Source of the DNA: Trichosphaerium sp. ATCC 40318
Taxonomy: Eukaryota; Protista; Tubulinea
Length of the DNA stretch: 64,000 nt
Assembly (NCBI GenBank): GCA_038496445.1
Contig: JALMLS010000271.1
Span: 124,001 to 188,000 of the forward strand
Direction: 5' to 3'
The notes beneath the pieces are model-generated. The model did no database searches. It had not been told where the DNA came from and worked only from the letters and a program-made list of their open reading frames with translations. Made by a program: the position numbers and the translations under genes. Each line of letters opens with the position of its first letter. Within the stretch, counting starts at the first letter, position 1. This document shows, in pieces, positions 17,287-34,115 of the stretch.

Positions 17287-17977
17287 ATGCGATAGCTTTG
17301 TAAGACATCACAACGTTTAATTCCCTTTTAGCTCATTTAAGACTCTTTGTTTTGATCGTACCGAGTACAATGTGCGTAGGTAAAATACTGTGATCATCTT
17401 CCATGGTCTATTAAAGCTGAGATTGAAATATTTTCAGACACTTGTAATTTGAATGATTTGTTTCAACATCTCAAGTGTTTTCAATTCGATGTCAAAGCTT
17501 GGCTATTTCTGTTTGTTTGGATATAAGTGGCCAGTGAAAATACGCTTCAACGCCCACGTGAGAGATATAGGTGAAGCTCCACTAGTTGGACCAGTAGATG
17601 TACATCAAATGAATGTTATGTTTTTTCTTAGTCTCACTCATACAACTGATTAAGGCAAAGCACATGTTGATTGCGCTAAATCCAAGCTCTGTATGCTATT
17701 CAGCAAGAGGGTGTGAAAGTGTTTTTTTTTTTTTCAGTCACGTGCGGTATTGTTTTCATTTATCTCCAGATGGTAAAACACCTTGTGCTTACGACTTTAT
17801 GTGAGCAAGAAAAGTCACTTGAGGAAACAAATACTGACCCATTCAACCCGACTAAATGTTCATTGTGGCTCAGGGTACTCAGCGTGCTCAAGGTGATTTT
17901 ACGTGAGTGGCGTCATTCTGTTTTCAGAGAAATCACAAATTCAACTGCAACCTTAGGCAATTTCAGAGAATTCGGAT

Positions 17978-17995
17978 ATTCATCGGACAAACTTT
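17978..17995 (+). promoter_or_regulatory. Conserved upstream motif ATTCAT(C/A)GGA(C/T)AAAC of the Cys-rich peptide family
   Basis: The motif recurs at 31738-31755 (+), 28930-28947 (-) and 19701-19718 (-). It lies 54-62 nt upstream of each ATG (55 nt for both 18051 and 31811). Confidence 0.55.
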
Positions 17996-18050: not shown

Positions 18051-18401
18051 ATGCAGCTCTTCTACATTACTATTGCTATTGTATTCCTATCACTATACGT
18101 ACAAACAACTGATGGTAAATGCGCTTTCAAATGGGCTTCTCGAACATTCAAACATGGAGGAAAAGGGTTCTGTGTCGAGAGATGGGGTTCTTGTCCTCTA
18201 CCAGGAGCTAATGGCAAATGGTATTCATCATACAACGAAATAGATGGAGGAAAGATTCAGTGTGCTGGTACTGGAGACTCAGGTAAATGCAGATGTAAGC
18301 GTTGTAAGAACAGAAACGTTGATGGAAAGAGCTGTAACAAAAGAATCACGTCTCAAAAAGTAACTGATTGTAATGGTCTCAGTACTTTCAAATGTGAATA
18401 A
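18051..18401 (+). CDS. Secreted cationic Cys-rich peptide (10 Cys), divergent member of the WGSCP family
   Basis: Hydrophobic signal peptide (about 22 aa). Motifs CxxKW, GGxx[FY]CxxxWGSCP and terminal [FY][KE]C are shared with 28470-28875 and 31811-32215. Intronless. Confidence 0.85.
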   Translation: MQLFYITIAIVFLSLYVQTTDGKCAFKWASRTFKHGGKGFCVERWGSCPLPGANGKWYSSYNEIDGGKIQCAGTGDSGKCRCKRCKNRNVDGKSCNKRITSQKVTDCNGLSTFKCE

Positions 18402-19238
18402 TTCTAAGCAAAGGCAATGATAACCTACCATACCCCTTAATTTTGGGTTTGTAGTAAAATAAAAAGAAACAATTTTATTATTATGTCAGTTTATTGACAC
18501 GACGGTACATTCCATATGCCTAGGCATGTAGCAAAGTAAACACCAACGATTGCGATCCCTTGTGACCACCATTAAACGATTGCAAGCTGTTGAACCACAC
18601 CCGCTGTGGGTACAATGGTTGTTTTTTAAAAAGGTTGATGGGTGTTGGGTGTTGGACTCCCGTCCTTTGGGTTTGATGGGTTTCCAGTACCTGTCTGGCT
18701 TGAAAGCGGCCTGAATAACATCTGCATGTGCTAAATGTACTTACCAATTGATGATAACGAATACTATCTATATTATTGCATTTGCTGAAAGTTAAAGTTC
18801 TAACACTCTCAGTTTGCTTTCTTCTATCAACTAACCAAGGAAAACTAACTATTAAATACAGACGATGTTGGGAGGAAGATAAAATGACTTATGGCAGTAC
18901 ACGTGTTTTACTCCGTTACAGACGTTTGGGTAAACTAAAAGTAAGATTACATAAAATAAGAAACTATTCCAGCATAATTTTCGGCATTGGTTAGAAGCCC
19001 ACCTGACGCCACTCTCTAAACTTGCTTGGTATGACAGCTAAAGTGTACACGTGTACGAACAGAATCAACATAAACACACAAATCCAATCATGACAATCTT
19101 CTTATATCGTTTGAATAAAGTGGTATTATTTTCGGCGAGGCTCAAAGTATTTTTGGAGGTGTGACTGACAAACGGACTTAACAAGTGGTCTCAGAAGAAA
19201 ACTTTGGTATGTGAGACATCTTTACTAATGTGTAGCGC

Positions 19239-19638
19239 TTATTTACATTCATAGCGGGTAACCTTAGGTCTACCTTCATAAAACATACTGCCATCATCAT
19301 GGTTACATCTTCCAGCGCTTGGTGTTCTCTGATTGCATCGTCTGCCACACTTTCTCTTGTTTGGAATTCGATAGAACTAAGTACAATGTAAGCAATGATA
19401 TCATAGCTTGTAAAAGTCCTGACCAGCACGTACATTACTATAATAGGTATCCGGACATGAACCCCATTTATCAGAACAATAAGTTCCACCGTTACCATCA
19501 GTCGGAGTAGAGTTTTGAGCACCATTTACCAACACATGATTCTTCTTCTTCGTTATTTCCTGCTACTGAGCATACAAACATCAATACAACGAAAATAGTG
19601 GTCAATGATAACATAGTCTTTGAAGAAAAGGTGTTCAT
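19239..19638 (-). pseudogene. WGSCP Cys-rich peptide copy 1, apparent 2-nt deletion near 19506
   Basis: Same signal peptide, intron and exon 2 (FYRIPNKRKCGRRCNQRTPSAGRCNHDDG...RYECK) as the paralogues. CTCTACTCCGACTGA here versus CTCTACGCTCGGACTGAT in copy 3 gives a premature TGA. Confidence 0.72.
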
Positions 19639-20077
19639 TTTGGGGTTAAATCCTTATTTTTATTTTTAGATGAGAGAAAACTCGTCAATTTTTGTTCACA
19701 TAGGTTTATCCGATGAATCCCCAATTTCACTTAACTTTCAAAAACATTATTGAGCTTTCAAAACACCATGGATGGTTGACAAAAACCCACAGATGTTAAT
19801 TCAAGAACGCTAAAAACGGTTCATTTAATAGGCGTTCAACCACGGTCAGTAGATGAACCAACAATGGTTCTAAGAAAGTAATATAAAATCTTCATTCATT
19901 ATCAAGCTAACATTGAAAGTGTGAAAATAAACTAAAACATCTGTTGACTCATGACTCAACTGTTGATGATTGTTTTGAACAATAAAAACTGTTCCTGTTT
20001 CATTTCAATGAATACTTAAGTTTATAAACCATCATCGCCAGATGCTTGAGTTGTCCACCCCCCACACCACTTTGTAT

Positions 20078-20704
20078 TTAAGGGACAGATTGTTTTAATA
20101 ACCGATGTACACCACAAGCTTCAAGGAACTTTCTAAAAATAGATATTCTACGAGGTAAACCAACATAAGAAAGAAAGTCTTTGTAAAACTCTTCTTTACC
20201 CTCCTCTGTCTTTTTTCCCTCTTTTTCAAATTCGAATGCCGCCATACTATATGAATGGTGGTATTTCAATGTGCTTCCATTCCATGTAATCGATATAATA
20301 AAATTTCTTCCTTTTTGTTCGCTGTAAACAACCTTTAGACATGAACCAGGTACAACAGCTTCCCATCCTTTGATTAAATGTTGCCTGTTGCTTCCTTGAT
20401 GATACCTATACACAAAACTCCAAGCAACAAGCTTAACAAGCCTTCCCATGCCTTCATTATTAGCCTTGACATACTCGTATGGCCAACCCTTATTTTTCCA
20501 GTTTGATTTGTGCCTGATTGTGTTTTTTTCGTTTCTGGGCTGTTTATACAATCTAATTTGCTTTCTATCCACAAATAAACTCTGTAAACTATCTATCTTT
20601 CCAATATCTAGCCAATTAGAGCATACTTTTAGAGAACAAGCATAAGAAGGCATGTCAAGGTATCCTATAATGTTGTAGAGTATTTCATTGGGTAGGTTCT
20701 CCAT
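20078..20704 (-). CDS. F-box domain protein, single exon
   Basis: N-terminal MENLPNEILYNIIGYLD...LKVCSNW matches the F-box pattern. C-terminal part not recognised. Confidence 0.75.
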   Translation of the reverse strand: MENLPNEILYNIIGYLDMPSYACSLKVCSNWLDIGKIDSLQSLFVDRKQIRLYKQPRNEKNTIRHKSNWKNKGWPYEYVKANNEGMGRLVKLVAWSFVYRYHQGSNRQHLIKGWEAVVPGSCLKVVYSEQKGRNFIISITWNGSTLKYHHSYSMAAFEFEKEGKKTEEGKEEFYKDFLSYVGLPRRISIFRKFLEACGVHRLLKQSVP

Positions 20705-21779
20705 TTTCAATAAGATAGTATTTTTGCTCACGTGAAAAAATGAATGTACTATGACATAGTCCACAGAAGTAAATCTAAGGCGACTTAAAGTTATTGTTTA
20801 ATTTTCTTAATTCCTTCTTGTAGAGCTGCTCCGCGAGAGCTAAAGCATCAGTCATGTCATTTATAATGCTGTGAATGGAGTACATCATGCGCTAATCCAG
20901 CTATTCTCAACGATTTGGTACCCAATTTGTTAACTTCTTTGTATTTGTTTCTAACGTATTGCAGCTCCGTGCAAAATGGGGCTTGCAAGGATACATCACT
21001 GCTGATAATGCTGTTCAGGTTGGTTATCATGTTATCTAAATGTAAGTATAACGTGGTTTTGTAGACGTACGCAACACACCAATACACAAACAACAGACAA
21101 ACATGCGAAATAGGATAGAAAATCACGGGAGTACAGAGATCCCAAGAAACCAGTTTTCGACTTTAAAGGTTAGTATAGTACTATGAGGCTTAGCATTCTT
21201 CATTTTTGCCAAGTTAAAAAGCCATAACTGAAATCCGCTCTAAAACTATTTTATTGCAGTATTCTCTTGTGAGGTAACAGGTTATACTCTTCTCTTAGGA
21301 GAGTGTTGTATATTTGTTTCACTACTCAAGCTGCTGGTACAGCTACTTCCCGCTTTTCTTTAATTGATTCAGCAACATTTTCTCTAATTTTGATTACCTC
21401 AATACACGTGCTTTCTCTTCATAGCTCTCGACTATCTTTAACACTTCTTTGGTGTTTGATTTTCTGTTAGGATAACTAAATTTTAACCATAATTCGGGCA
21501 TGTGACTGAACTAAAGTTGACTCACCACAGTGAACCTAACGCTGTACGAGTACAACCAGTGCACTGAGTCGCACTGGACACGAGTTTTAACCCCTGTAAT
21601 TTTTGGCATCGACTGACTAAGCAACTTGAAATGGTCTCAATTTCAGAAAAAACTAGGAAAAATAAATCGCCTAAGCATTCTATACCATTCACTCTATGTT
21701 GGTGCTGTGATGCTTGAAGCGTATTATCCAAAAAACTCATTTTGTATACAATTAGAATTTTCAAAGGCTCAAAGGAGTA

Positions 21780-22670
21780 CCCTTTGACGTTCAAGTCGGA
21801 AAGTCAGCTGTTTTTTTTCTCTTTTTCGGTGTAGTAACGTAACCTTTCTTTCAATGCTACTACTTCGCCCTGAAGTTTTTGCTTGCTGTTAAGTATCTGG
21901 CCAAGTTTCTCCTCTAACATGTCGTATCCTTTTGTGACGCCCTTGATAGTTTTTTCATGACCTTGCACGTAGCTTCTGTAGAACTTTATCAGTATTGTAG
22001 TGTGTTTAAAACGTGAACGTACTCTTCATACATTTGTTGCTTTACTTGTAGGTATTTAGAGTATTCACGTGTCATTCTGAACGCAAGTGCTGTAAAACAA
22101 CATTAATACATGAGAAAAGTTGAAGAAATCGTACAGTGCATAGAGAAGGTCTCGTATCTTTGCCCGCAAGCTTGCACGAACCTACCAAGTGAACAAGTAA
22201 CGTCATTAGCATCATCAATATCGTTGATATTGTTGTGGTAAAATGCATTGCGTTGATTTACCAAGTACTCAAATTCTTTGTAAGCGCATTCAGGATCGGG
22301 TAATATGGTTGCCACTTTGCTCCAATAGTCTGTTGGCATGCGCTTTATTCCACGCTCTTTTTTTCCCTGAATTTTTAAGCGCCATTTTGTCACGTCAAAG
22401 CGGATTGGGTCGCCTTTAGGGTCCATAAAACGGGCGTAAAAATCAGTTGATTTTAGTATGTCATTTTTCTTGGCGTGGCAGTATACTCTATACAACACTG
22501 AACTTGCAATCACGCAAGCAGCTCTCATCACACAAAAGAGTATGAAGAAGGGGTGTTTGTAACTTAGCGCTGTACTCTGATAGAACTGAAAAAGCTCTCC
22601 CCGGATTGCGTATTTGTATTATCGGGTATCTAAAACTTGTAAGAAAGTGAGGCGCATATTAAAAGTTCGT
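21780..22670 (-). pseudogene. 5'-truncated multi-exon hypothetical gene with an RxxxxH (HEPN-like) motif
   Basis: ORF 22103-22531 contains LVNQRNAFYHN, with further GT-AG exons down to about 21780. 21941-22670 is an inverted homologue of 27670-28375. Confidence 0.5.
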
Positions 22671-23039
22671 CCAGACGCCAATCCTTGTTGGCTTCAGTGT
22701 CTCATATAAGAGCTAATACTGAAATTACAGCTTGTCATAATCGCTTAACCCAACCTTGAACAAATAAAGAAAAAAACAAGAAAACTTGCGATGGTTAAAA
22801 GTGAGTACTCTGTTGACTACACTGTGCGGAGCGTCACTCTCATACCATTTGCTTTCATAAAGTTTACCATTCTATCTACTTCAGCGAGCGTATGTAACGA
22901 ACTCATCAATCTCAAACACATGTTTTGTACATTGGGTTCGCTCGTTAATATACCAATTTACTGCATTCTCTGTACGCCACAATTACAGTTATTTCCAAGA
23001 CATCTTTCATACTTTCTCGCATCATGATACTTTCTGTAA

Positions 23040-23110
23040 ATGAAAGGTCAATAGTATGAACACCAGCAAGGGCCCTTGATGCTTTCATTTGTTATTTCTG
23101 TATTTCCGGT
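23040..23110 (-). pseudogene. Isolated frameshifted LRR-repeat remnant
   Basis: Reverse strand reads TEITNESIK/(shift)LAGVHTIDLS, the same repeat as 11700-12784. Confidence 0.55.
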
Positions 23111-23181
23111 AAATATTATGAATCTACGGTCCTTTATGGAGATATTGGTTGACTTTTAAACTTCACCAACATAGAAAAGCA

Positions 23182-25328
23182 ATGCGTTGTGTTATTCTTC
23201 TTCTTGCTTTATTATCCATTGTGGCAGCTGAATCAATCGGTGGGCACGTTTTGGTACGGTTATTATTAATCATTTAAAACGACGTTTGACGGGCGTTAAA
23301 TTGCTTTTACAAGCAAACATAGTGTTTTGTACAGCTCTTAGTTATCTTTATTACGTTATTTATTACTATCGCTTATTACAGCCTGTAGGTCAATAAAGAC
23401 TACGGCGCTTACGTCTACTACAACGTACAACCAAGTCAAAACGATTTTAAGAAAGATCCAGTCGTTTTATGGCTTCAAGGAGGCCCTGGCTGTTCATCAC
23501 TGTTTGGTACGTCAAAAGAAAAAAAAGCAAGCACAAGAAATATCTTTTAACTTTTTTTTTTTTTAAAGGATCGTTTGTGGAGAATGGTCCACAGCTCATC
23601 TCAAAAAATGGATCTTTACATGATAACCCATGGTCATGGAATACAAATGCTACTGTTATCTACATAGATAGTCCAGTTGGTACAGGGTGAGACTGAGATA
23701 AAATTACAAAAAATCACGTGATTTTTTTTTCTGTTTCTGACTTTTTTTTCTAAAACTGAAGGTACTCCTACGTTGAGAATCCAATTGGTTATGTGACAAA
23801 TGAAAAAGTATTAGCAGAAGAGCTATATACTACATTATACGCTATATTATTCGACATTGTACCCGAACTTGGATCTTTACCGTTTTATGTTTTCGGCGAA
23901 AGTTATGGTACGTATTTTTTTGAATTTTTTCGGGTTTTTTTGGAATACCAGACAAGTAACTTTATTTTATCTCTTAGCTGGAAAATATGTACCTTGGATA
24001 GCGCACACAATACTTGAGAATAATCCTAAAGCTTCAAAAGAGATTCTACTCGAAGGTATTGGCATAGGCGACGGATGGGTTCAACCTTACTACCAAGGTA
24101 TGAAAAAATCGATTAAAACTCTTTTTTCCCGCGTGTATCACGTGTCTTGAAAGTAATTTTGTTTTTGCTTACACTCATCAACAGCTGGATCATATGCAAC
24201 GTTTTTATATTATCATAACTTGATAAACAAAGCTGAACTTGTACGTTGTTTTGGGAAACCCAAAAAAAAAAAAACTAAAAAAAACACATAAATAATGTTA
24301 ACTGTTTTATCTCCTTTAGGATGTTGCGAAAACTACCTTTGCACTTTATCAGGAACAAATTGATGCTGGGGATTATGTCCTAGCTGCTTTTACAGGCAAT
24401 ATAATGTAATAAGCAAGCGTGTTTGGACTTTGTTGTTAAAAAAAGTTGCTAGGTTGGGCGTTTTAGTTGAAGCTGCTGGTGGCGTTGATGTTTATGATAT
24501 TCGCGTCAAAGTTGATCCAACAGATGTCCTACAAGTTAGTCTAAAGCGTGATTAATCTAATATATTGATTATTGAACCTAGACCGCATTAACAAAGTATC
24601 TAAATGAACCAGCAACAAAGGCTAAGATGGGTGCAGGTAAGAGCCGATATAAGAGATAAGATATACTAAATCTCGTTTTTCTTTGTTTCAGGAAACGCTG
24701 AGTGGAGCGCTTGTGCAGTTGTTCCAAATTTATTCCTGTTGGATGATGAAACCAGGTCTTCTGAGATGCTATTCCCTGGAATTCTAGAGAAAATACCAGT
24801 TGCGTATCTGTTACACTCCTTTTGTCTGAAACCTGGTTTGAAACTTGGTTTTTTCTTCTCCTTGTGAATGCATCTCCTCGTTTAATGAATATCATAAACA
24901 GGATATTGCTAACTGGTTGTGATAGGTTCTATTGTACAATGGCGACTATGATTTGATTTGTAATATGTTTGGTACAACAGATTGGGCCTCAAGGATGCAA
25001 TGGCCATATAAACAGCAATTTGATGATGCCAGAAATACCACGTGGGTTGTAGATGGTTCAAAAGCAGGATACTACAAGGTAAGCGGTCAGAAGACTAATC
25101 ATGATAATAAATCACGTGGGTTTTTTTTGATTTTTGCTTTAACACGTGTTGTTTTAGGGCGCTGGAAAGCCTAAACTTACTCATTTGATTGTACATGATG
25201 CAGGTAAGACTTTGGCTTTGTTATAATTTTGTTGCTGACTGAGAACGTCCCTAGGACACATGGCTCCATTCAACCAACCAAAAAACACACATTCAATGCT
25301 GTACTCCTTTATCAAGGGCGACTTGTAA
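23182..25328 (+). CDS. Serine carboxypeptidase, peptidase family S10
   Basis: Signal peptide, WLQGGPGCSS, ENGP, IDSPVGTGYSY, GESYAGKYVP (catalytic Ser), YNGDYDLICN (Asp), DAGHMAP (His). Confidence 0.95.
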
Positions 25329-25659
25329 GATTGTAGCCTCCAGATCGTTGATAAAAAACTGTTTGATGAATATCACGGTTTTGTTTAAAACACATGTGTT
25401 TGCTTACATTAGCTGGTAGCTTGAGTAGTTACAACCGATTCGTAGGCTAGTAAAGAATCTTGAAATGAGACATCTTCATTCATAATTAAAGCGGTATGAT
25501 CATACTTGCTGATCCCTCATAGTACGCTTGTCTCCTATGCTTTCGTACTGTCACGTATAGCTTTTCTCCAAACAAACTTACTTTTTTGAATCATCAAAGT
25601 TGACATCTACTAAAAGTCAGCTACCGGTAAGGCAAAGTGTTTGTTGTGTTTCTACAAGC

Positions 25660-25757
25660 TCTTTTTGGTTGCCACTTTTACAGTTTAGTTACAGACTGTA
25701 ACTGCCAGTTCTTTTTGGTTGCCACTTTTACAGTTTAGTTAACAGACTGTAACTGCA
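25660..25757. repeat. Tandem duplication of a ~50-bp unit containing a palindrome
   Basis: TCTTTTTGGTTGCCACTTTTACAGTTTAGTT(A)ACAGACTGTAACTGC occurs twice. The unit contains AGTTACAG-A-CTGTAACT. Confidence 0.9.
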
Positions 25758-26962
25758 GAACTATGCAATGCAAAACTTGCATGGAGAGTTGGAAAGTAGT
25801 AACTATAGGTAGGCATGAGTTGCGAATTGCAAAAGGAACAAGAGACCCCAACATTAACAAAAATTGTAAAGATGATATATAAGCATTATGCTGGATTTTG
25901 TGCATCGTAAACCACAGGTTCAAACAAAAAAAAAGAGACTGTATACTGCGTTAGGGTGTTCAATTTTGTTTTGAAACATGCATACTAATTCGTCAAACAT
26001 CTCAAATTGCTGATCCCAAATACTTGGTCTAGAATGCCAGAATACTCATATACAATGTGTTGTTAAATGTTTTAGATTCGTTCATTTATAGTTCACTGTT
26101 GTTTGAAATTTCGAGAAGTACTACAAAGTGAGTGTTAAAATATGCGCTGGAACTATTTACCCGAGCCTTCTAGTGATATAAAGTATGTTTAACAACTACT
26201 AATAATGCCATTGAAGGGTATTGTAACATTCAAAGTGAACAACATACAAATGGGGATGAACAACAAATATTTTAACGAAAACAAAACTAAAAAAAAAAAG
26301 TATGTTTTGTTGTAATAGTTTCTTTTCAATGGTCACGTGTGATTATGAGGTTTGTGAGAGTTTCACCATACCCGATAATTCATAGAGTATGCAGTATATA
26401 TCTGAATTAGGTTATTCCGATAGTTTAAAGCTCCGGTATACCCGACTGAGTAAGAGTTGTTCTAGAAGTGTGTAGTATCGTATTTGTGAAACTTAAATCA
26501 CGTGAAACGCCTTCAGAGGTGTTTTCAGACAATACAAATCTCATGTTTTTAAAACAATTAGGTCCAGCACCTACCACGTGACAATACGATCACACAAAAA
26601 GTATGAAAAAGTCGTCAGAAAATTTCTCCTTGTCAAAACGTGATTGATTGACACATTTTTGGAATTCTTAAAACCACTTTAAAAACACCTCATATCATCA
26701 TGGTTCGTAACACTGTGCGCGAATTATCGATATTTATGTGTTTCGGAATGAAACTTTAGTTTTTAGTTAAATTTTTATAATTGAGCTTTAATTTATGCTT
26801 ATTTAGGGTCTCCGTGGCATTTCCAAGCGTCAAAGGCAAAATAAAAAATGTAGAACCAATTTGAACAAAAGTTTATTAACTTTATGTTTTCCTTTTCGGG
26901 TTTTGTGGTCTTTTCAAAAACATATTCAACCTCTGCCCACAAAGCAGGCAACACGTGATATA

Positions 26963-28375
26963 ATGTCTAACAGTCGTATTCCAAACCCGCAATCAAATCA
27001 TAGCAACACAGGTAGTACTACTTCGACAGGTAGTACTTTAGGTGGTGATTCAAATGGTATGTTATCTACAAGCGTTCACTTTCTTATCCCAGTAGCCCCT
27101 CAACAGTTACCACCAAGCTCCAGATACCTGGGAAATAACAATGGTCGTGAACAACACCGTCAATCTCTCAGTAAAGAGTATGCGACAGGTTAGAACAAAT
27201 AAAATGTTAACACAACTTTAGATCACAGGAGATGCTTTTAAAGAACTGGAAAGCAACAGTTGGAGGTATGTACTACGGAACATCCTTGTTTAATTCTTGC
27301 TCACTTACAAGCTAGAAAAGTTGAATAGAGGAAAAATTCAAACAAAAAAACCGAACCAGGCGAGATATGCTCCTTATCCTAAAGCTAGAAAAAAGAAGCG
27401 CACACCAAAGGAACAAGAAAGGTACTGTTCACCAAGAGTTTAATAGTTTGAAAATTTGCTTCAAGAGTCAGCACGTGATTTTTTCGAAGCAGTTCAAAGT
27501 TGTCACTTACCTTCCGTAGATTTGTTGTGGACAGTACTCGCATTCCTGCAGCTACTACACAACCAAAGCTGTACGAATCTAATTTTTTTCTCACCTGACA
27601 TCTTACGTAGTATTCAACAGCCAATCCCGAAGCCTTCGAAAAAAGCTGCGCCAACAATCACACCACATGCGTACTAACTTTTAATATGCGCGTCACTTTC
27701 TTACAAGTTTTAGATACCCGATATTACAATTACCCAATCCGGGAGAGCTTTTTCAGTTCTATCAGAGTACAGCGCTAAGTTACAAACACCCTTCTTCATA
27801 CTCTCTTGTGTGATGAGAGTTGCTATCATGATTGCAAGTTCAGTGTTGTATAGAGTATACTGCCACGCCAAGAAAAATGACATATTAAAATCAACAGATT
27901 TTAACACCTGCGTTTATGGACCCTAAAAGCGACCCAATCCGCTTTGACATGACAAAATGGCGCTTAAAAATTCAGGGGAAAAAAGAGCGTGGAATAAAGC
28001 GCATGCCAACAGACTATTGGAGCAAAGTGGCAACCATATTACCTGATCCTGAGAATTTGAGTACTTGGTAAATCAACGCAATGCACATTATCATAACAAT
28101 ATCAGCGATATTGATGATGCTAGTGACGTTACTTGTTCACTTGGTAGGTTCGTACACAGCTTGAGGGCAAAGATGCCCTCTCTATGCACTGTATGATTTC
28201 TTCAACTTTTCTCATGTATTAATGTTGTTTTACAGCGCTTGCGTTCAGAATGACACGTGAATACTCTAAATACACACAAGTAAAGCAACAAATGTAGAAA
28301 GATTACGTGCGCATTTTAAACACACTACAATACTGATAACAGAAGTAGGTGCAAGGTCTTGAAAAAAAATCAGGG
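26963..28375 (+). pseudogene. Multi-exon hypothetical gene, frameshifted and 3'-truncated paralogue of 21780-22670
   Basis: MSNSRIPNPQ... start with GT-AG exons and a basic ARYAPYPKARKKK segment. The 3' part matches 21941-22670 inverted, with several indels. NQRNAHYHN retained. Confidence 0.55.
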
Positions 28376-28381
28376 GAACTG

Positions 28382-29217
28382 ATAACATCAAAATTTATTG
28401 TAGTTTGTAACAAGTAGTCTCATAGCATAAATATCACGTGGACTGATCATCCATACCAATGTGTATTGCTTACAAGCATTCATAGCGGATAAGCGTAGGA
28501 ATTCCGCCAGCATACATTTTGCCATCATAATGGTTACATCTTCCAGCGCTTGGTGTTCTCTGACTACATTTTCTACCACACTTTTTCTTGGTTGGAATTC
28601 GTACGAACTAAGTACAATGTAAGCATATATATATCATAGCTTGTAAAAGGCAAGAATAGCATACGTACACCATCATAATTGGTGTATGGGCATGATCCCC
28701 ATACATCAGCACAATAAGTTCCGCCGCTACCACTAGTCCGAACGTAGAGTTTTGAGCACCATTTACCATAGCATGCTTCTTCCTCTTCGTCATTTCCTGC
28801 TACTGAGCATACAAACATCAATACAACGAAAATAGTGGTCAATGATAACATAGTCTTTGAAGAAAAGGTGTTCATTGTGTGGTTAAATCCTTATTTTTAG
28901 ATGAGAGAAAACTCGTCATTTTTTTTCACGAAGTTTATCCGATGAATCCCCGATTTCACTTAACTATGCCAACAACTTGAATGGAACCCGGTGTTTATGT
29001 TCCAAGAGATTGTGGTAATAATGAACGCCAGAACAAAGGTTTAAATTAATACTCCTAACACGACTACACGTGACTTCACGTAACACTGGAAATATTGTAT
29101 AGGCTCTAGGATAGAGCTTTATCCAATGCTTGTGGTGTCACGTAACTACACGATGTACACGAGAATACACGCACCATTTTTAAAACCATCTTTTTAAATA
29201 ATTACATATTCCATGCC
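28382..29217. repeat. Left arm of a ~0.84-kb inverted segmental duplication (partner 31451-32300)
   Basis: Highly similar reverse complement from ATAACATCAAAATTTATTG to ATATTCCATGCC. Covers the peptide gene, its 3' region and about 340 bp upstream. Confidence 0.92.
28470..28875 (-). CDS. Secreted Cys-rich peptide (8 mature Cys), WGSCP family copy 2
   Basis: Intron 28608-28668 (GTACGT...CTTAG). Spliced mature region ACYGKWCSKLYVRTSGSGGTYCADVWGSCPYTNYDGFVRIPTKKKCGRKCSQRTPSAGRCNHYDGKMYAGGIPTLIRYECL. Confidence 0.88.
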
Positions 29218-29788
29218 CTGTTTTCCAAAAGAAATAAATTGACTTGTTGCCCTTTGTTTCGTGTTGTATCAGGTATGGTATAAAAAGAATATTATCCGTA
29301 TTTGAACATTGACAATCTTTGTCAATGAAAGAGCTGACCTGGAGTGATAGTCCAGGTTTTTAGTTTGTCGTTACTCACAAATGTATGTACAAGAGATAAC
29401 CACTTGTGTTTTGTTAGAGACACCAAGATGTTGTCTCCTTCTCAACCAAAAAAAGGAGGAAGTATAAAGTATGATTTTGTCGTGGTGTTATAGTAGAAAG
29501 AGCAAGGTTTCATGAACACGCTTGACTGCAATTAACAAAAGTTTGTATTGTAAATAAAAGTTTCTGTAACAAAAAGTACTCTGTCACTGTTCAACTGAAT
29601 ACCACAATATTTTTTATAAACAGTACAATCACTAAAGTGATTATGATCCCAATTTTTTGTAAAAACTCCTTGGCTTTCCACAAGGAATACTGTCAACAGT
29701 TTTCAAGTCACTTAGCCAAATATATTAGTCGCATTCTCTGCTACCAATTTCATTGCTTTTTCGTTTCTCCACGCGGTGATCTTCAAAG

Positions 29789-30574
29789 ATGGCAAATATA
29801 CTCAATGGTCGTATTAATATAATAGATGAGCTTGTCACCAAACAAAAAGAACTTGATGCAAGAGAACAATCATTGGTTAAAAGAGAAAACGATATTAATC
29901 GCTTGAAAGAGGACCTAGTCAAAAGGGAGGCTAAATTAGACGCCAACAATGCTGAACTTGCAAAGAGGATTGACAAATTGAAAAAGCACGATGAAGAAGC
30001 TACAAAGGAGAGAAACGAGCTAGTAGAGAAAACAAAACAAGAAATAAAAGGACTTCACGAAGACTACGACAAAGAATTCAATGAGAAGAAAGAAGAAGGA
30101 GAAAAGAAGCTTGCTGAAATCCAACAGGAGGTAGAAAGGCTCGAAGCGGCTATGCAACAGTACAAAGACTGCGCAAGCAGCCGGATAACACTGAACGTTG
30201 GTGGCGTTAAGTACTATACGACTAAAACCACCTTGAAGGGCAAGTCACCTTTTTTCGACGCCTTGCTTAGCGATAGATGGAATCTACAAGAAACTCTTGG
30301 TGAGTCTGGTGAGATTTTTATCGACAGGAATGGTGATGCATTCTACGATATCCTAGAATTCTTTCGTACTGGTAAAGTGGTGTGTATGGAGAATAATAGG
30401 GAGAGGATCTTAGAAGAGTGCACTTTTTACCAAATACCTGCAATGGCAAACCTTCTACCGGAACCTAGTAAACCAGACCTTAAACTAGTGCCTAAACAAG
30501 AGCTGCAACGAAATATGAGAACAGCAGGAAAGGTATCACGAAGGGGCTTTAGAGGACGACACGCTTTTAATTAA
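29789..30574 (+). CDS. Coiled-coil plus KCTD-type BTB/POZ domain protein, single exon
   Basis: E/K-rich heptad N-terminal half. RITLNVGGVKYYTTKTTL...FIDRNGDAFYDILEFFRTG is the T1/KCTD BTB signature. Confidence 0.88.
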   Translation: MANILNGRINIIDELVTKQKELDAREQSLVKRENDINRLKEDLVKREAKLDANNAELAKRIDKLKKHDEEATKERNELVEKTKQEIKGLHEDYDKEFNEKKEEGEKKLAEIQQEVERLEAAMQQYKDCASSRITLNVGGVKYYTTKTTLKGKSPFFDALLSDRWNLQETLGESGEIFIDRNGDAFYDILEFFRTGKVVCMENNRERILEECTFYQIPAMANLLPEPSKPDLKLVPKQELQRNMRTAGKVSRRGFRGRHAFN

Positions 30575-31025
30575 TAAGAATACGAAACCTTGCTGTCTTG
30601 TAGTGAAAATGTGATTTTATAATAAACAGTGGTGGTAGTGTACAATTTACATGTGACAAAAAAGACTTATTTTAGAATGGTGAAGTTTCCAACACGACCA
30701 ACATTACTAAACAAAACTCATAAGTACCTTTTGTTAAAAAACCAAAACAAAAAAAAGGTTGAAAAAAAAGTCAGTCAGTCTGAGTGACTCGTACATATCG
30801 GGTGCCTTAAATGGTTGTGACTTGAAGAAGTGCTCTAAACAGAAGAAAAAGTTAGAGGCGAGGTCTATACTACAACAAGATAACAAGAAAAAAGGAATAA
30901 GTTCACTTCTCTTTAATAAAAGCACGTGATTTAGGATTAAATACTAGAAGTTCGGTTTCAAAAAAGTACTCGTGTAAAAGAGGTTAGATATAAGTTTGGA
31001 AAGTAAATTGAGTTCCAAAGTGACC

Positions 31026-31106
31026 GCACTAATGTAACTGATCAAGGTAAACATGCTTTTGGTGAAGCCTGCTTTAACCCGTTGCCTTATTTAGACCAAG
31101 CGTGTT
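31026..31106 (+). pseudogene. Inverted fragment of the 3' end of the LRR gene at 33029-34115
   Basis: GCACTAATGTAACTGATCAAGGTAAACATGCTTTTG...GTTGCCTTATTTAGAC matches the reverse complement of about 33022-33102. Confidence 0.75.
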
Positions 31107-31450
31107 CTTTAAGAATAAACAAATGTCTTAGTCCATTTTGAATACTTTGGTTTTACTTTTTGGTTACCTCAAAATGATTGCTAGTACTTCATGCGTGCAT
31201 AGATCTATTTGTAATTGTTGAGTTCTATGAATACTGTATGTGGTGATGGCAAGTACAACAAAGAACTTTTTTTTGGGAAAAATCACGTGCACGGAAAGAG
31301 AAATCAGTGTTGGTAATAAATATGAAATTGAAAGGAAATCAAGCTAAAACAAGTGTTATCAACATCAACGAAGAATTTGAACTACCCACTTCATCTAACA
31401 CGCAATCCGAGTGTTATTTTTCACTGTGTGAGTGTGACAATGATATGCCA

Positions 31451-32300
31451 GGCATGGAATATGTAATTACTTAAAAAGATGGTTTTTAAAATGGTGCGTG
31501 TATTCTCGTGTACATCGTGTAGTTACGTGACGGACCACTTTTTATCGCACATACTCAACGCATTAGATAAAGCTCTATCTAGAGCCTATACAATATTTCC
31601 AGTGTTACGTGTGTAACGTGTAGTCGTGTTAGGAGTATTAACTTAACCTTTGTTCTGGCGTTCATTATTACCACAATCACTTGGAACATAAACACAGGGT
31701 CCATTCAAGTTGTTGGCATAGTTAAGTGAAATCGGGGATTCATAGGATAAACTTTGTGAAAAAAAATTGACGAGTTTTCTCTCATCTAAAAATAAGGATT
31801 TAACCCCACAATGAACACCTTTTCTTCAAAGACTATGTTATCACTGACCACTATTTTCGTTGTATTGATGTTTGTATGCTCAGTAGCAGGAAATAACGAA
31901 GAGGAAGAAACATGCATTGGTAAATGGTGCTCAAAACTCTACGCTCGGACTGATGGTAGCGGTGGAACTTATTGTGCCGACTTATGGGGGTCATGCCCAG
32001 TAAGTAATTATGACGGTGTACGTATGCTATTCTGGAAGTTTACAAGCTATGATATATATTGCTTACATTGTACTTAGTTTGAACGAATTCCAAACAAGAG
32101 AAAGTGTGGTAGAAAATGTAATCAGAGAACACCAAGCGCTGGAAGATGTAACCATTATGTTGGCAGTATGTTTTATGATGGAAATGCTGAGCTTGCCCGC
32201 TATGAATGCAAATAAGCAATACACATTGGTATTGATCAGTCCACGTGATATTTATGCTATGAGACTACTTGTTACAAACTACAATAAATTTTGATGTTAT
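31451..32300. repeat. Right arm of the inverted segmental duplication (partner 28382-29217)
   Basis: Reverse-complement match to 28382-29217. Confidence 0.92.
31811..32215 (+). CDS. Secreted Cys-rich peptide (8 mature Cys), WGSCP family copy 3
   Basis: Intron 32018-32077 (60 nt, GTACGT...CTTAG). Mature region TCIGKWCSKLYARTDGSGGTYCADLWGSCPVSNYDGFERIPNKRKCGRKCNQRTPSAGRCNHYVGSMFYDGNAELARYECK. Confidence 0.88.
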
Positions 32301-33028: not shown

Positions 33029-34115
33029 TCAGTCTAAATAAGGCAACTGGTTATTGTAGGCTCCAACAAAAGCATGTTTACCTCGATCAGTTACATTAGT
33101 GCCTGTAAGCCTAATTGTGTGAACGCCAATAAGTACTTAACTCCTTTATCACTTATATTTGTGAACCTAACATCAATTGTATGTACTCCAGCCAATGCCT
33201 TCATCCCTTCATCTGCAATGTAACAGTCGGATAAACAAATTGAATGAACACCAGCTAACGCCTTAATACCTTCATCTGAAACCTTTGTTTCACTCAGATC
33301 TATAGCATGTACACCTGCTAAAGCTTTGATCCCAACATTTGTAACCTTTGTTTGGCATAAGTTTATCGTATGAACTCCAGCTAGTGCCCGAATGCCATCA
33401 TCTGTGATACCTTTACATTTTCTTAAACTTATTGTATGAACTCCAGCTAATGCCTTAATGCCTTCATCTGTAATACCTTGACAGAAAGAGAGATTGATTT
33501 TATGAACACCAGCTAGCGCCTTGATGCTATCATCTTTCACTTGCTGACAATCGCCTAGATAAATTGTATGAACGCCTGCTAATGCCTCAACATTTGAAAT
33601 ATTTGTGTTGTGGGAAAGATCAATTGTATGAACAGATAATCGTAAAAAAGCCTTTAGACCTTCATCAGTAACATAATTGCGTGATAACCGTATTGTTTTT
33701 GCTCCAGCCAGATGTTTGAGATGATCATAAGTTACACATGGAGTGCTAAATCTCTGATGAAAGTCACGTTTAAAAGCTTTAAAATCAGATGGCAGCAGTG
33801 TTGATATGCCACATTCAAATCTGAGGCCATACGCTCTTTTGAGGTACTTTAAATGTTGACGTTTGATATAAAACTCAATGGATAGAGTGTTTGTTTTAAT
33901 GAGATGTGGCATTGTTTTGAATAGTTTTTTGAGCTTTTGTTTTGATTCAATGACAATCACTCTTCTGTTTTCATATCCCACGTGTTGTATTGCGATCATT
34001 TTTAATAATTTTGATGTACAGAATGCATAGATAGAGGTGAAACAAATTGTAAAATAATGACAGTAAGTTCAACAGGGATATCATCAAAGAATGCGCTCTT
34101 TGAGTTCATCGCCAT
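33029..34115 (-). pseudogene. F-box-like plus LRR ('ALAGVHTI') gene with two apparent frameshifts
   Basis: The F-box-like start MAMNSKSAFFDDIPVELTVIILQFV (ATG 34115) is out of frame with the 33999-33091 ORF. The last repeat, GVHTIRLTGTNVTDRG, is in another frame. Confidence 0.7.

Follow-up and report, generated by a model that had tools for sequence, protein, structure and literature searches.

Do four small genes in the marine protist Trichosphaerium sp. ATCC 40318 belong to an undescribed family of secreted peptides, and do their mature parts diversify under selection? The genes lie in a 64,000-nt stretch of contig JALMLS010000271.1 (assembly GCA_038496445.1, positions 124,001 to 188,000, forward strand), hereafter the window, in whose own numbering positions are given unless another contig is named. 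The first-pass annotation had placed their starts at 18051+, 19638-, 28875-, and 31811+ and had described Cys-rich 'WGSCP' peptides with an invariant leader and a hypervariable mature region. Reading both strands and aligning the three 8-Cys copies, we found genes of this kind at all four starts. They are members of a new, expressed, database-orphan multigene family of predicted secreted, Cys-rich proteins that is almost confined to this one protist and shows birth-and-death turnover with pseudogenes. The Cys scaffold and a basic motif between Cys5 and Cys7 are strongly constrained, and the loops between the cysteines change at or above the neutral rate.

We searched the whole assembly of the organism (70.3 Mb, 642 contigs) in six frames and obtained 56 matches to exon 1 and 58 to exon 2, with paralogue matches reaching E values of 1e-20 to 1e-44, far above chance. 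About 45 loci on more than 25 contigs carry both exons, accompanied by fragments and relics, and the family holds about 30 distinct sequences. A two-exon model could be built at 27 loci; the intron (phase 0, 48-61 nt, GT..AG ends) sits at the same codon boundary in all 27, and exon 2 is open for 41-45 codons and encodes four Cys. At most exon-2 matches genome-wide, the open frame and the exon have the same length (41-45 codons), indicating an in-frame stop codon directly before exon 2; in the three 8-Cys copies of the window, this stop is the TAG of the intron acceptor. A 10-Cys type, represented in the window by the gene at 18051, was found at four loci, two of them identical in sequence. Moreover, a 112-aa open reading frame (ORF) from an MMETSP transcript assembly (P0001) equals, residue for residue, exon 1 plus exon 2 of one paralogue (L022), which demonstrates that splicing and expression are real for the family. 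The family-size search, proposed as a check by the first-pass annotation, thus returned a positive answer, and a spliced transcript exists for a paralogue.

Near-identical copies of one family gene were also observed on five small contigs (C187:30490-30866, C281:44916-45292, C319:21327-21703, C375:26590-26966, and C378:4214-4590), and contigs C17, C68, C565, and C466 likewise share identical pairs. Either a segment was amplified very recently, or the assembly holds redundant contigs or haplotypes.

Within the window, 28875- and 31811+ are intact two-exon genes of 69 + 45 codons. The gene at 19638-, previously listed as a further copy, is broken: 2 nt are missing from its exon 1 between 19507 and 19506 relative to both other 8-Cys copies, and its frame runs into a TGA at 19500-19498, after codon 46, with exon 2 intact at 45 codons. 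We regard it as a pseudogene; an assembly indel is less likely because the deletion site is not a homopolymer. The intron of 60-61 nt that had been proposed for three genes is right for 28875- (61 nt) and 31811+ (60 nt), and that of 19638- measures 57 nt. In the three 8-Cys copies of the window, residues 1-28 are identical and are followed by NNEEEE or NDEEEE, as had been described. Past the acidic stretch, 28875- and 31811+ differ at 21 of 81 residues, the same count as before (22 of 87 with the acidic stretch counted). The gene at 18051 does encode 116 aa with 10 Cys and has no intron, and yet is less of an outlier than it had seemed, since it shares the upstream element described below and both halves of the 8-Cys proteins. 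Its product aligns to the 8-Cys exon-1 profile (hhalign probability 96%) and exon-2 profile (81%); compared with the 8-Cys type, it lacks the intron, carries an insert of about 25 residues, has lost Cys2, and has gained three Cys.

The alignment of 26 8-Cys paralogues revealed a rigid framework with a few variable stretches. All eight Cys columns are invariant; the invariant columns comprise Cys1, W-C-S, L-Y, T, Cys3, D, W-G, Cys4-P, and Y in exon 1, and Cys5, Cys6, R, Cys7-N, and Cys8 in exon 2. The blocks KWCS.LY and C.D.WG.CP are nearly invariant, and almost nothing varies between Cys5 and Cys7 (consensus CGKRCNQRTPSAGRCN). Variable sites cluster in the Cys2-Cys3 loop, near the exon junction, and in the Cys7-Cys8 loop, so the description of the mature region as hypervariable applies to these loops and not to the conserved blocks. 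Eight cysteines are present in both intact window copies, as expected; the cationic character assigned to the mature domain is weak, with a median charge of -4 in the exon-1 half, +7 in the exon-2 half, and a net charge of +1 to +6. The N-terminus has a short polar start and about 18 hydrophobic residues followed by VAG|N or VSG|N, a signal-peptide pattern from which the family is predicted to be secreted. The acidic stretch, earlier interpreted as a propiece, probably forms the N-terminus of the mature protein because it is short (5-6 residues), adjoins Cys1, and has no basic cleavage site before Cys1; the mature part would then comprise about 87 aa. An internal duplication of the two halves was considered and rejected (hhalign probability 0.3%).

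The scaffold had been called unrecognised, and database comparisons bear this out. A profile of the mature exon-1 part, searched against 1.84 billion representative proteins, gave three matches: the organism's own transcript product P0001, one ORF from a TARA Oceans metagenome (P0003), and P0002, a 1602-aa bacterial protein with Ig-like repeats that matched only through a repeated GTY.VEVYGSC motif and was discarded as spurious. P0003, the only non-self homologue, is an intronless 112-aa ORF (L057, positions 477-815) on the 2.9-kb scaffold TARA_SAMEA6026529. It aligns to the family profile over its N-terminal half (hhalign 97%, E = 3e-11) but has Lys in place of Cys4 in the WGSCP motif and another arrangement of cysteines towards the C-terminus, and the 180 nt read upstream of it did not show the family promoter element. 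Word-based protein searches with the 18051 protein, exon 1 of 31811+, and P0001 returned nothing besides P0001 itself, and the exon-1 profile detected no relative among metagenome and viral contigs. Pfam gave no match above threshold for the members and no match at all for full-length P0001 and P0003, and neither profile nor single-sequence searches matched any PDB sequence.

Three Pfam families gave sub-threshold hits that varied from member to member, and they were rejected. ApeC (PF24148, ApeC_platyh) matched 2 of 26 members, at best with 16.7 bits (cut-off 27) and over model positions 14-52 of 182. Myticin (PF10690, Myticin-prepro) was hit by 5 of 26 exon-1 pieces with a best E of 0.0093 and, in the one score recorded, 13.2 bits against 28.5. 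Conotoxin (PF02950) was hit by 1 of 26 members (E = 0.069), and the family has no basic site before Cys1.

Structure prediction and fold searching, also suggested by the first-pass annotation, gave a limited return. AlphaFold2 yielded an unusable model for the mature part of the 8-Cys protein P0001 (predicted local distance difference test, pLDDT, 46). For the mature 18051 protein, one beta-rich model reached a pLDDT of 73 and a predicted template modelling score of 0.66, and the other four models were poor. This single confident model of five had no Foldseek match at E <= 0.001, a TM-score of at most 0.43 against the ESM Atlas, and a best VIA neighbour, the leech carboxypeptidase inhibitor 1dtv_A, at Z 3.0 (root-mean-square deviation 3.4 over 59 residues), below the background that the tool itself gives (typical best Z 7-8). 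The ESM Atlas itself contains P0001 with a model pLDDT of 0.36 and no feature neighbours, and the matches of that model are meaningless. No known family can be assigned, and a new fold is not demonstrated.

Members of the family also share their upstream region. Alignment of the 160 nt 5' of 25 paralogues showed one conserved block, and we searched the genome for the corresponding 26-nt pattern GAAATCGGGNNTNCATCGGAYAAACT with up to two mismatches, using the reversed pattern as a control. The element was found 47 times, compared with 0 matches for the control, and 41 of the 47 copies precede a family exon-1 match; the genes so preceded include the 10-Cys members at 18051 and on C29. It contains two ATCGG half-sites 11 nt apart, and its end lies 56-57 nt from the ATG in the three window genes that were measured; an element shared at a fixed distance from the start codon implies common regulation. 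Most members also have an AATAAA 60-80 nt past the stop codon.

The remaining 6 of the 47 matches have no intact gene downstream (C143:11881, C115:21988, C211:29151, C235:64186, C152:73483, and C282:2750). The four that were inspected are decayed family relics: truncated leader-like ORFs follow the element on C143 (L058) and C152 (L062), and very short ORFs only on C115 (L059) and C235 (L061). The copy on C211 has no ATG nearby. At C235:61904, an extra element (L063) is followed by a copy of the family gene with a frameshift. The gene-less copies look like relics of dead members.

Selection was assessed from the ratio of nonsynonymous to synonymous substitution rates (dN/dS), estimated from Nei-Gojobori counts exon by exon in 11 phylogenetically independent pairs picked on a maximum-likelihood tree and in a second set of the 6 most recent independent pairs. 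Over the 11 pairs, the ratio was 0.51 in the signal, 0.38 in the Cys3..Cys4 block, and 0.10 in the Cys5..Cys7 block (P(<1) = 1e-8), compared with 1.39 in the Cys2-Cys3 loop and 1.12 in the Cys7-Cys8 loop, neither of which was significant. In the six recent pairs, the inter-Cys loops, as set by the Cys framework, reached 1.84 (P = 0.014), the scaffold 0.64, the signal 0.46, and the whole mature part 1.32 (P = 0.13). In these six pairs, nonsynonymous change in the mature part ran at 4.2 times the rate of the signal (P = 3e-8), with synonymous rates equal (P = 0.45). The contrast between leader and mature part is therefore real, in agreement with the conserved leader first described on this secreted-type, disulfide-rich family. 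The first-pass annotation had further expected a mature-part ratio above 1 and had named one well below 1 as evidence to the contrary. The loops of the recent pairs exceed 1; the mature part as a whole ranges from 0.84 in the pair 28875-/31811+ and less over the 11 pairs, as given below, to the non-significant 1.32 of the recent pairs. A value well below 1 was not observed for it, and positive or diversifying selection on the loops is suggestive, not established.

We favour, with a little better than even confidence, the explanation that these genes encode a lineage-restricted set of secreted miniproteins acting as extracellular effectors. The signal peptide would be cleaved and the protein would fold into a disulfide-locked miniprotein, whose invariant basic core may bind a constant, probably anionic, target feature and whose fast-changing loops may tune specificity. 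As a defensin- or toxin-like arsenal, the set could then target bacteria taken as prey, competing organisms, or pathogens, either in the food vacuole or extracellularly. That the action is directed against other organisms is our best guess and a tentative one, held at somewhat less than even confidence. We are more doubtful of the fullest version, namely that the family represents a new disulfide-rich fold and the diversifying arsenal of a deep-branching marine amoeba, in which the 26-nt element would switch the set on, gene conversion would unify leaders and flanks, and selection would keep the loops that contact the target distinct.

Several results weigh against an arsenal shaped by diversifying selection. 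The 11 deeper pairs give a dN/dS of 0.68 for the mature part as a whole, significantly under 1 (P = 0.0016), and the value above 1 in the loops is nominal only, coming from one region test that was partly chosen after alignment and from Nei-Gojobori counts with recombination unmodelled. In eight paralogue pairs other than 28875-/31811+, the mature part diverges at 0.3-1.2 times the rate of the noncoding flanks, and since it is no faster than the flanks there, much of the loop change could be neutral drift. In 28875-/31811+ itself, synonymous divergence is also raised in the mature part, to 3-5 times that of the flanks (P = 0.03 to 0.0007), which amino-acid selection alone does not explain. The function is wholly inferred, the searches having found no homologue of known role and the modelling no reliable structure, and the weakly positive net charge is unlike that of classic cationic antimicrobial peptides. 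Only two sequencing runs matched the stretch, each over a small share of it and neither recorded as RNA. Contigs of a small public run of unrecorded type match 28875- without error over parts of exon 1 and over parts of exon 2 plus the 3' untranslated region; they cover neither its intron nor the spacer and bridge no junction.

The genes 28875- and 31811+ are twins on inverted arms of 850 nt about 2.2 kb apart, and their leader, promoter, and 3' flank are nearly identical, as had been reported: the signal differs at 1 of 81 nt (1.2%) with no nonsynonymous change, the upstream region at 15 of 338 nt, and the 3' flank at 0 of 88 nt. The noncoding arms together differ at 19 of 486 nt (3.9%) versus 40 of 261 nt (15.3%) in the mature coding part (P = 1e-7), and dN/dS within the latter is 0.40 in exon 1 and, as a point estimate, 1.96 in exon 2. 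Because the eight other pairs lack this contrast between flank and mature part, it belongs to the inverted duplicate and not to the family. For the twins only, we see an almost even chance that gene conversion between the arms, or a local rise in the mutation rate, and not diversifying selection on the peptide, has produced conserved flanks and divergent mature parts. This is consistent with the restriction of the contrast to the inverted pair, with the excess at silent sites, and with the closely spaced inverted arms, which make a good conversion substrate. On the other hand, conversion tracts would have had to skip both mature-coding patches yet homogenise both flanks, the signal, and part of the intron, which suggests selection against homogenised mature parts. 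Also unfavourable to it, no closer donor for the twin mature parts was found among the 27 modelled paralogues and the broken copy 19638-, which is slightly nearer to 31811+ in exon 2. The most likely combination is that gene conversion between the arms homogenises leader and flanks and that selection possibly keeps the mature parts different; alternatively, the duplication is recent and the mature part has since changed very fast.

Other roles have been weighed against that of an extracellular effector set. A rigid scaffold with a hypervariable loop is the classic pattern of inhibitor families, and the family, with its conserved framework and one long hypervariable loop, could comprise small disulfide-rich protease inhibitors in which the Cys7-Cys8 loop makes the reactive site and evolves in response to varied target proteases, whether the amoeba's own or those of prey and pathogens. 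The best, very weak structural neighbour of the 10-Cys model, the leech inhibitor 1dtv, would agree with such a role; its Z of 3.0, however, is far below the usual best values and comes from the one confident model of five, and Pfam and PDB searches gave no sequence match to inhibitor families. We regard an inhibitor function as improbable. Structural or adhesive proteins of a cyst wall, cell coat, or extracellular matrix, whose loops are unconstrained and vary neutrally, would account for the non-significant loop ratios of about 1.1-1.4 over the 11 pairs and for mature parts that diverge at about the noncoding rate in most pairs, and many copies under one kind of promoter would fit proteins made in bulk at a particular stage. 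Such proteins are about as improbable: no repeats, low-complexity stretches, or lectin or chitin-binding signatures were found (Pfam), the loop ratio in the recent pairs is 1.84, and the genome holds about 30 distinct sequences, not amplified identical copies.

A conserved leader on a variable, Cys-framed secreted part is likewise what pheromone-like signals for self-recognition or mating would show, as in Euplotes; the diversity would serve to tell kin or mating types apart. Such systems usually consist of allelic series at one locus or a few loci, whereas about 45 paralogues coexist here in one genome with pseudogene turnover, and no receptor candidate is linked to the genes; we consider this role very unlikely. 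An effector set remains the explanation we prefer for the family.

Free-living amoebae live by killing and digesting bacteria, and their secreted effectors are poorly known beyond saposin-like pore formers. The family described here is large, expressed, co-regulated, and without relatives, with a rigid scaffold and loops free to vary. If its members are bioactive, they would offer a new antimicrobial, toxin, or inhibitor scaffold and a tractable case of how a protist arsenal diversifies; if the fullest version given above is true, a protist would have its own counterpart of conotoxins and defensins, and bioactive miniproteins a new scaffold. If the loops drift neutrally, the family would be an ordinary lineage-specific orphan expansion. 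In addition, the 26-nt element at 41 family gene starts provides a handle for finding the regulator and the inducing condition.

Features of the family genes and of the inverted duplication in the window, with positions in window coordinates
Feature	Position	Strand	Details and basis
Upstream element of the 10-Cys gene	17968..17993	+	26 nt, 2 mismatches to consensus, 57 nt before ATG; genome-wide pattern search
10-Cys intronless member 18051+	18051..18401	+	Uninterrupted 116-codon ORF, signal peptide included
Broken 8-Cys copy 19638-	19239..19638	-	Exon 1 19434-19638 (205 nt), intron 19377-19433 (57 nt), exon 2 19239-19376
Upstream element of 19638-	19703..19728	-	2 mismatches; pattern search
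Inverted duplication, left arm	28382..29217	-	Carries 28875- with promoter and 3' flank; repeat search, segment-wise divergence
28875- exon 1	28669..28875	-	69 codons: signal peptide, acidic stretch, Cys1-4
28875- intron	28608..28668	-	61 nt, GTACGT..TTAG, phase 0
28875- exon 2	28470..28607	-	45 codons + stop: basic half, Cys5-8
Upstream element of 28875-	28932..28957	-	0 mismatches; pattern search
AATAAA past 28875-	28394..28399	-	Sequence read
Inverted duplication, right arm	31451..32300	+	Carries 31811+; repeat search, segment-wise divergence
Upstream element of 31811+	31728..31753	+	1 mismatch, 57 nt before ATG; pattern search
31811+ exon 1	31811..32017	+	69 codons
31811+ intron	32018..32077	+	60 nt, GTACGT..TTAG, phase 0
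31811+ exon 2	32078..32215	+	45 codons + TAA
AATAAA past 31811+	32283..32288	+	Sequence read

Other genes and repeats surround the family members in the window. Between the twin genes lies a BTB_2 ORF of the KCTD type (29789-30574, +, 261 aa, Pfam E = 4e-16) whose N-terminal half is coiled-coil-like; a contig of the public run X1 matches 30602-30653, and the 139 unrelated letters that precede 30602 in it could mark a splice junction, or a 3' exon that follows shortly after the stop of the BTB ORF (30574). An F-box ORF adjoins the broken copy (20078-20764, -, 228 aa, Pfam E = 4e-6). A second inverted duplication (21986-22670, -, and 27673-28339, +; arms 93-97% identical) carries an ORF with an R-x4-H motif (NQRNAFYH) and no Pfam match, which measures 142 aa in the left copy (22103-22531) and is split in the right one (27916-28071 and 28065-28196), probably broken. 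A multi-exon gene apparently lies at 23469-25174 (+), where pieces of ORFs show motifs like those of serine carboxypeptidases (WNTNATVIYIDSPVGTG; GESY). Four copies of a 60-nt unit with 62-85% identity to a reference copy occur at 33232-33549, with a spacing of 126 nt between the first two and of 66 nt among the last three, and are possibly leucine-rich-repeat-like coding repeats on the minus strand.

We finally compared the family with known systems. ApeC domains are likewise Cys-rich and extracellular, and residues 29-67 of one family copy align with the first 40 or so model positions; the match covers only 39 of 182 positions, and the protein is half the domain's length. Myticin and macin antimicrobial peptides also combine a signal peptide with an 8-Cys mature peptide, and differ in Cys spacing and conserved motifs, the one alignment seen spanning the signal peptide and the first Cys region. 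With defensin-like families (plant DEFL, NCR, and SCR proteins, animal defensins, and big defensins), the proteins share small size, predicted secretion, richness in Cys, loops that vary, and genes in large families, clustered or dispersed, that turn over by birth and death; with big defensins they also share two lobes separated by an intron. In contrast to these families, they have no defensin, knottin, or CS-alpha-beta signature by sequence or by fold search with the weak model, are weakly cationic overall, and carry four of their Cys within an acidic N-terminal half. Conotoxin superfamilies resemble the family in being multigene, with a signal far more conserved than the mature part, a fixed Cys framework, and fast inter-Cys loops, and their raised synonymous change in the mature part is paralleled here in the twin pair. 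Unlike conotoxins, to which they have no sequence relation, the present proteins come from a protist, are much longer in the mature part (about 87 aa), have no long propeptide with a basic cleavage site, and have an intron that splits the mature protein into two halves. Of the traits that define families with a conserved leader and a fast mature part, the leader contrast is present, and the fixed Cys framework holds in the 8-Cys paralogues and is altered in the 10-Cys type and in the TARA homologue. Together, these comparisons show that the family resembles the conotoxin, defensin-like, and NCR/SCR families in its evolutionary mode.

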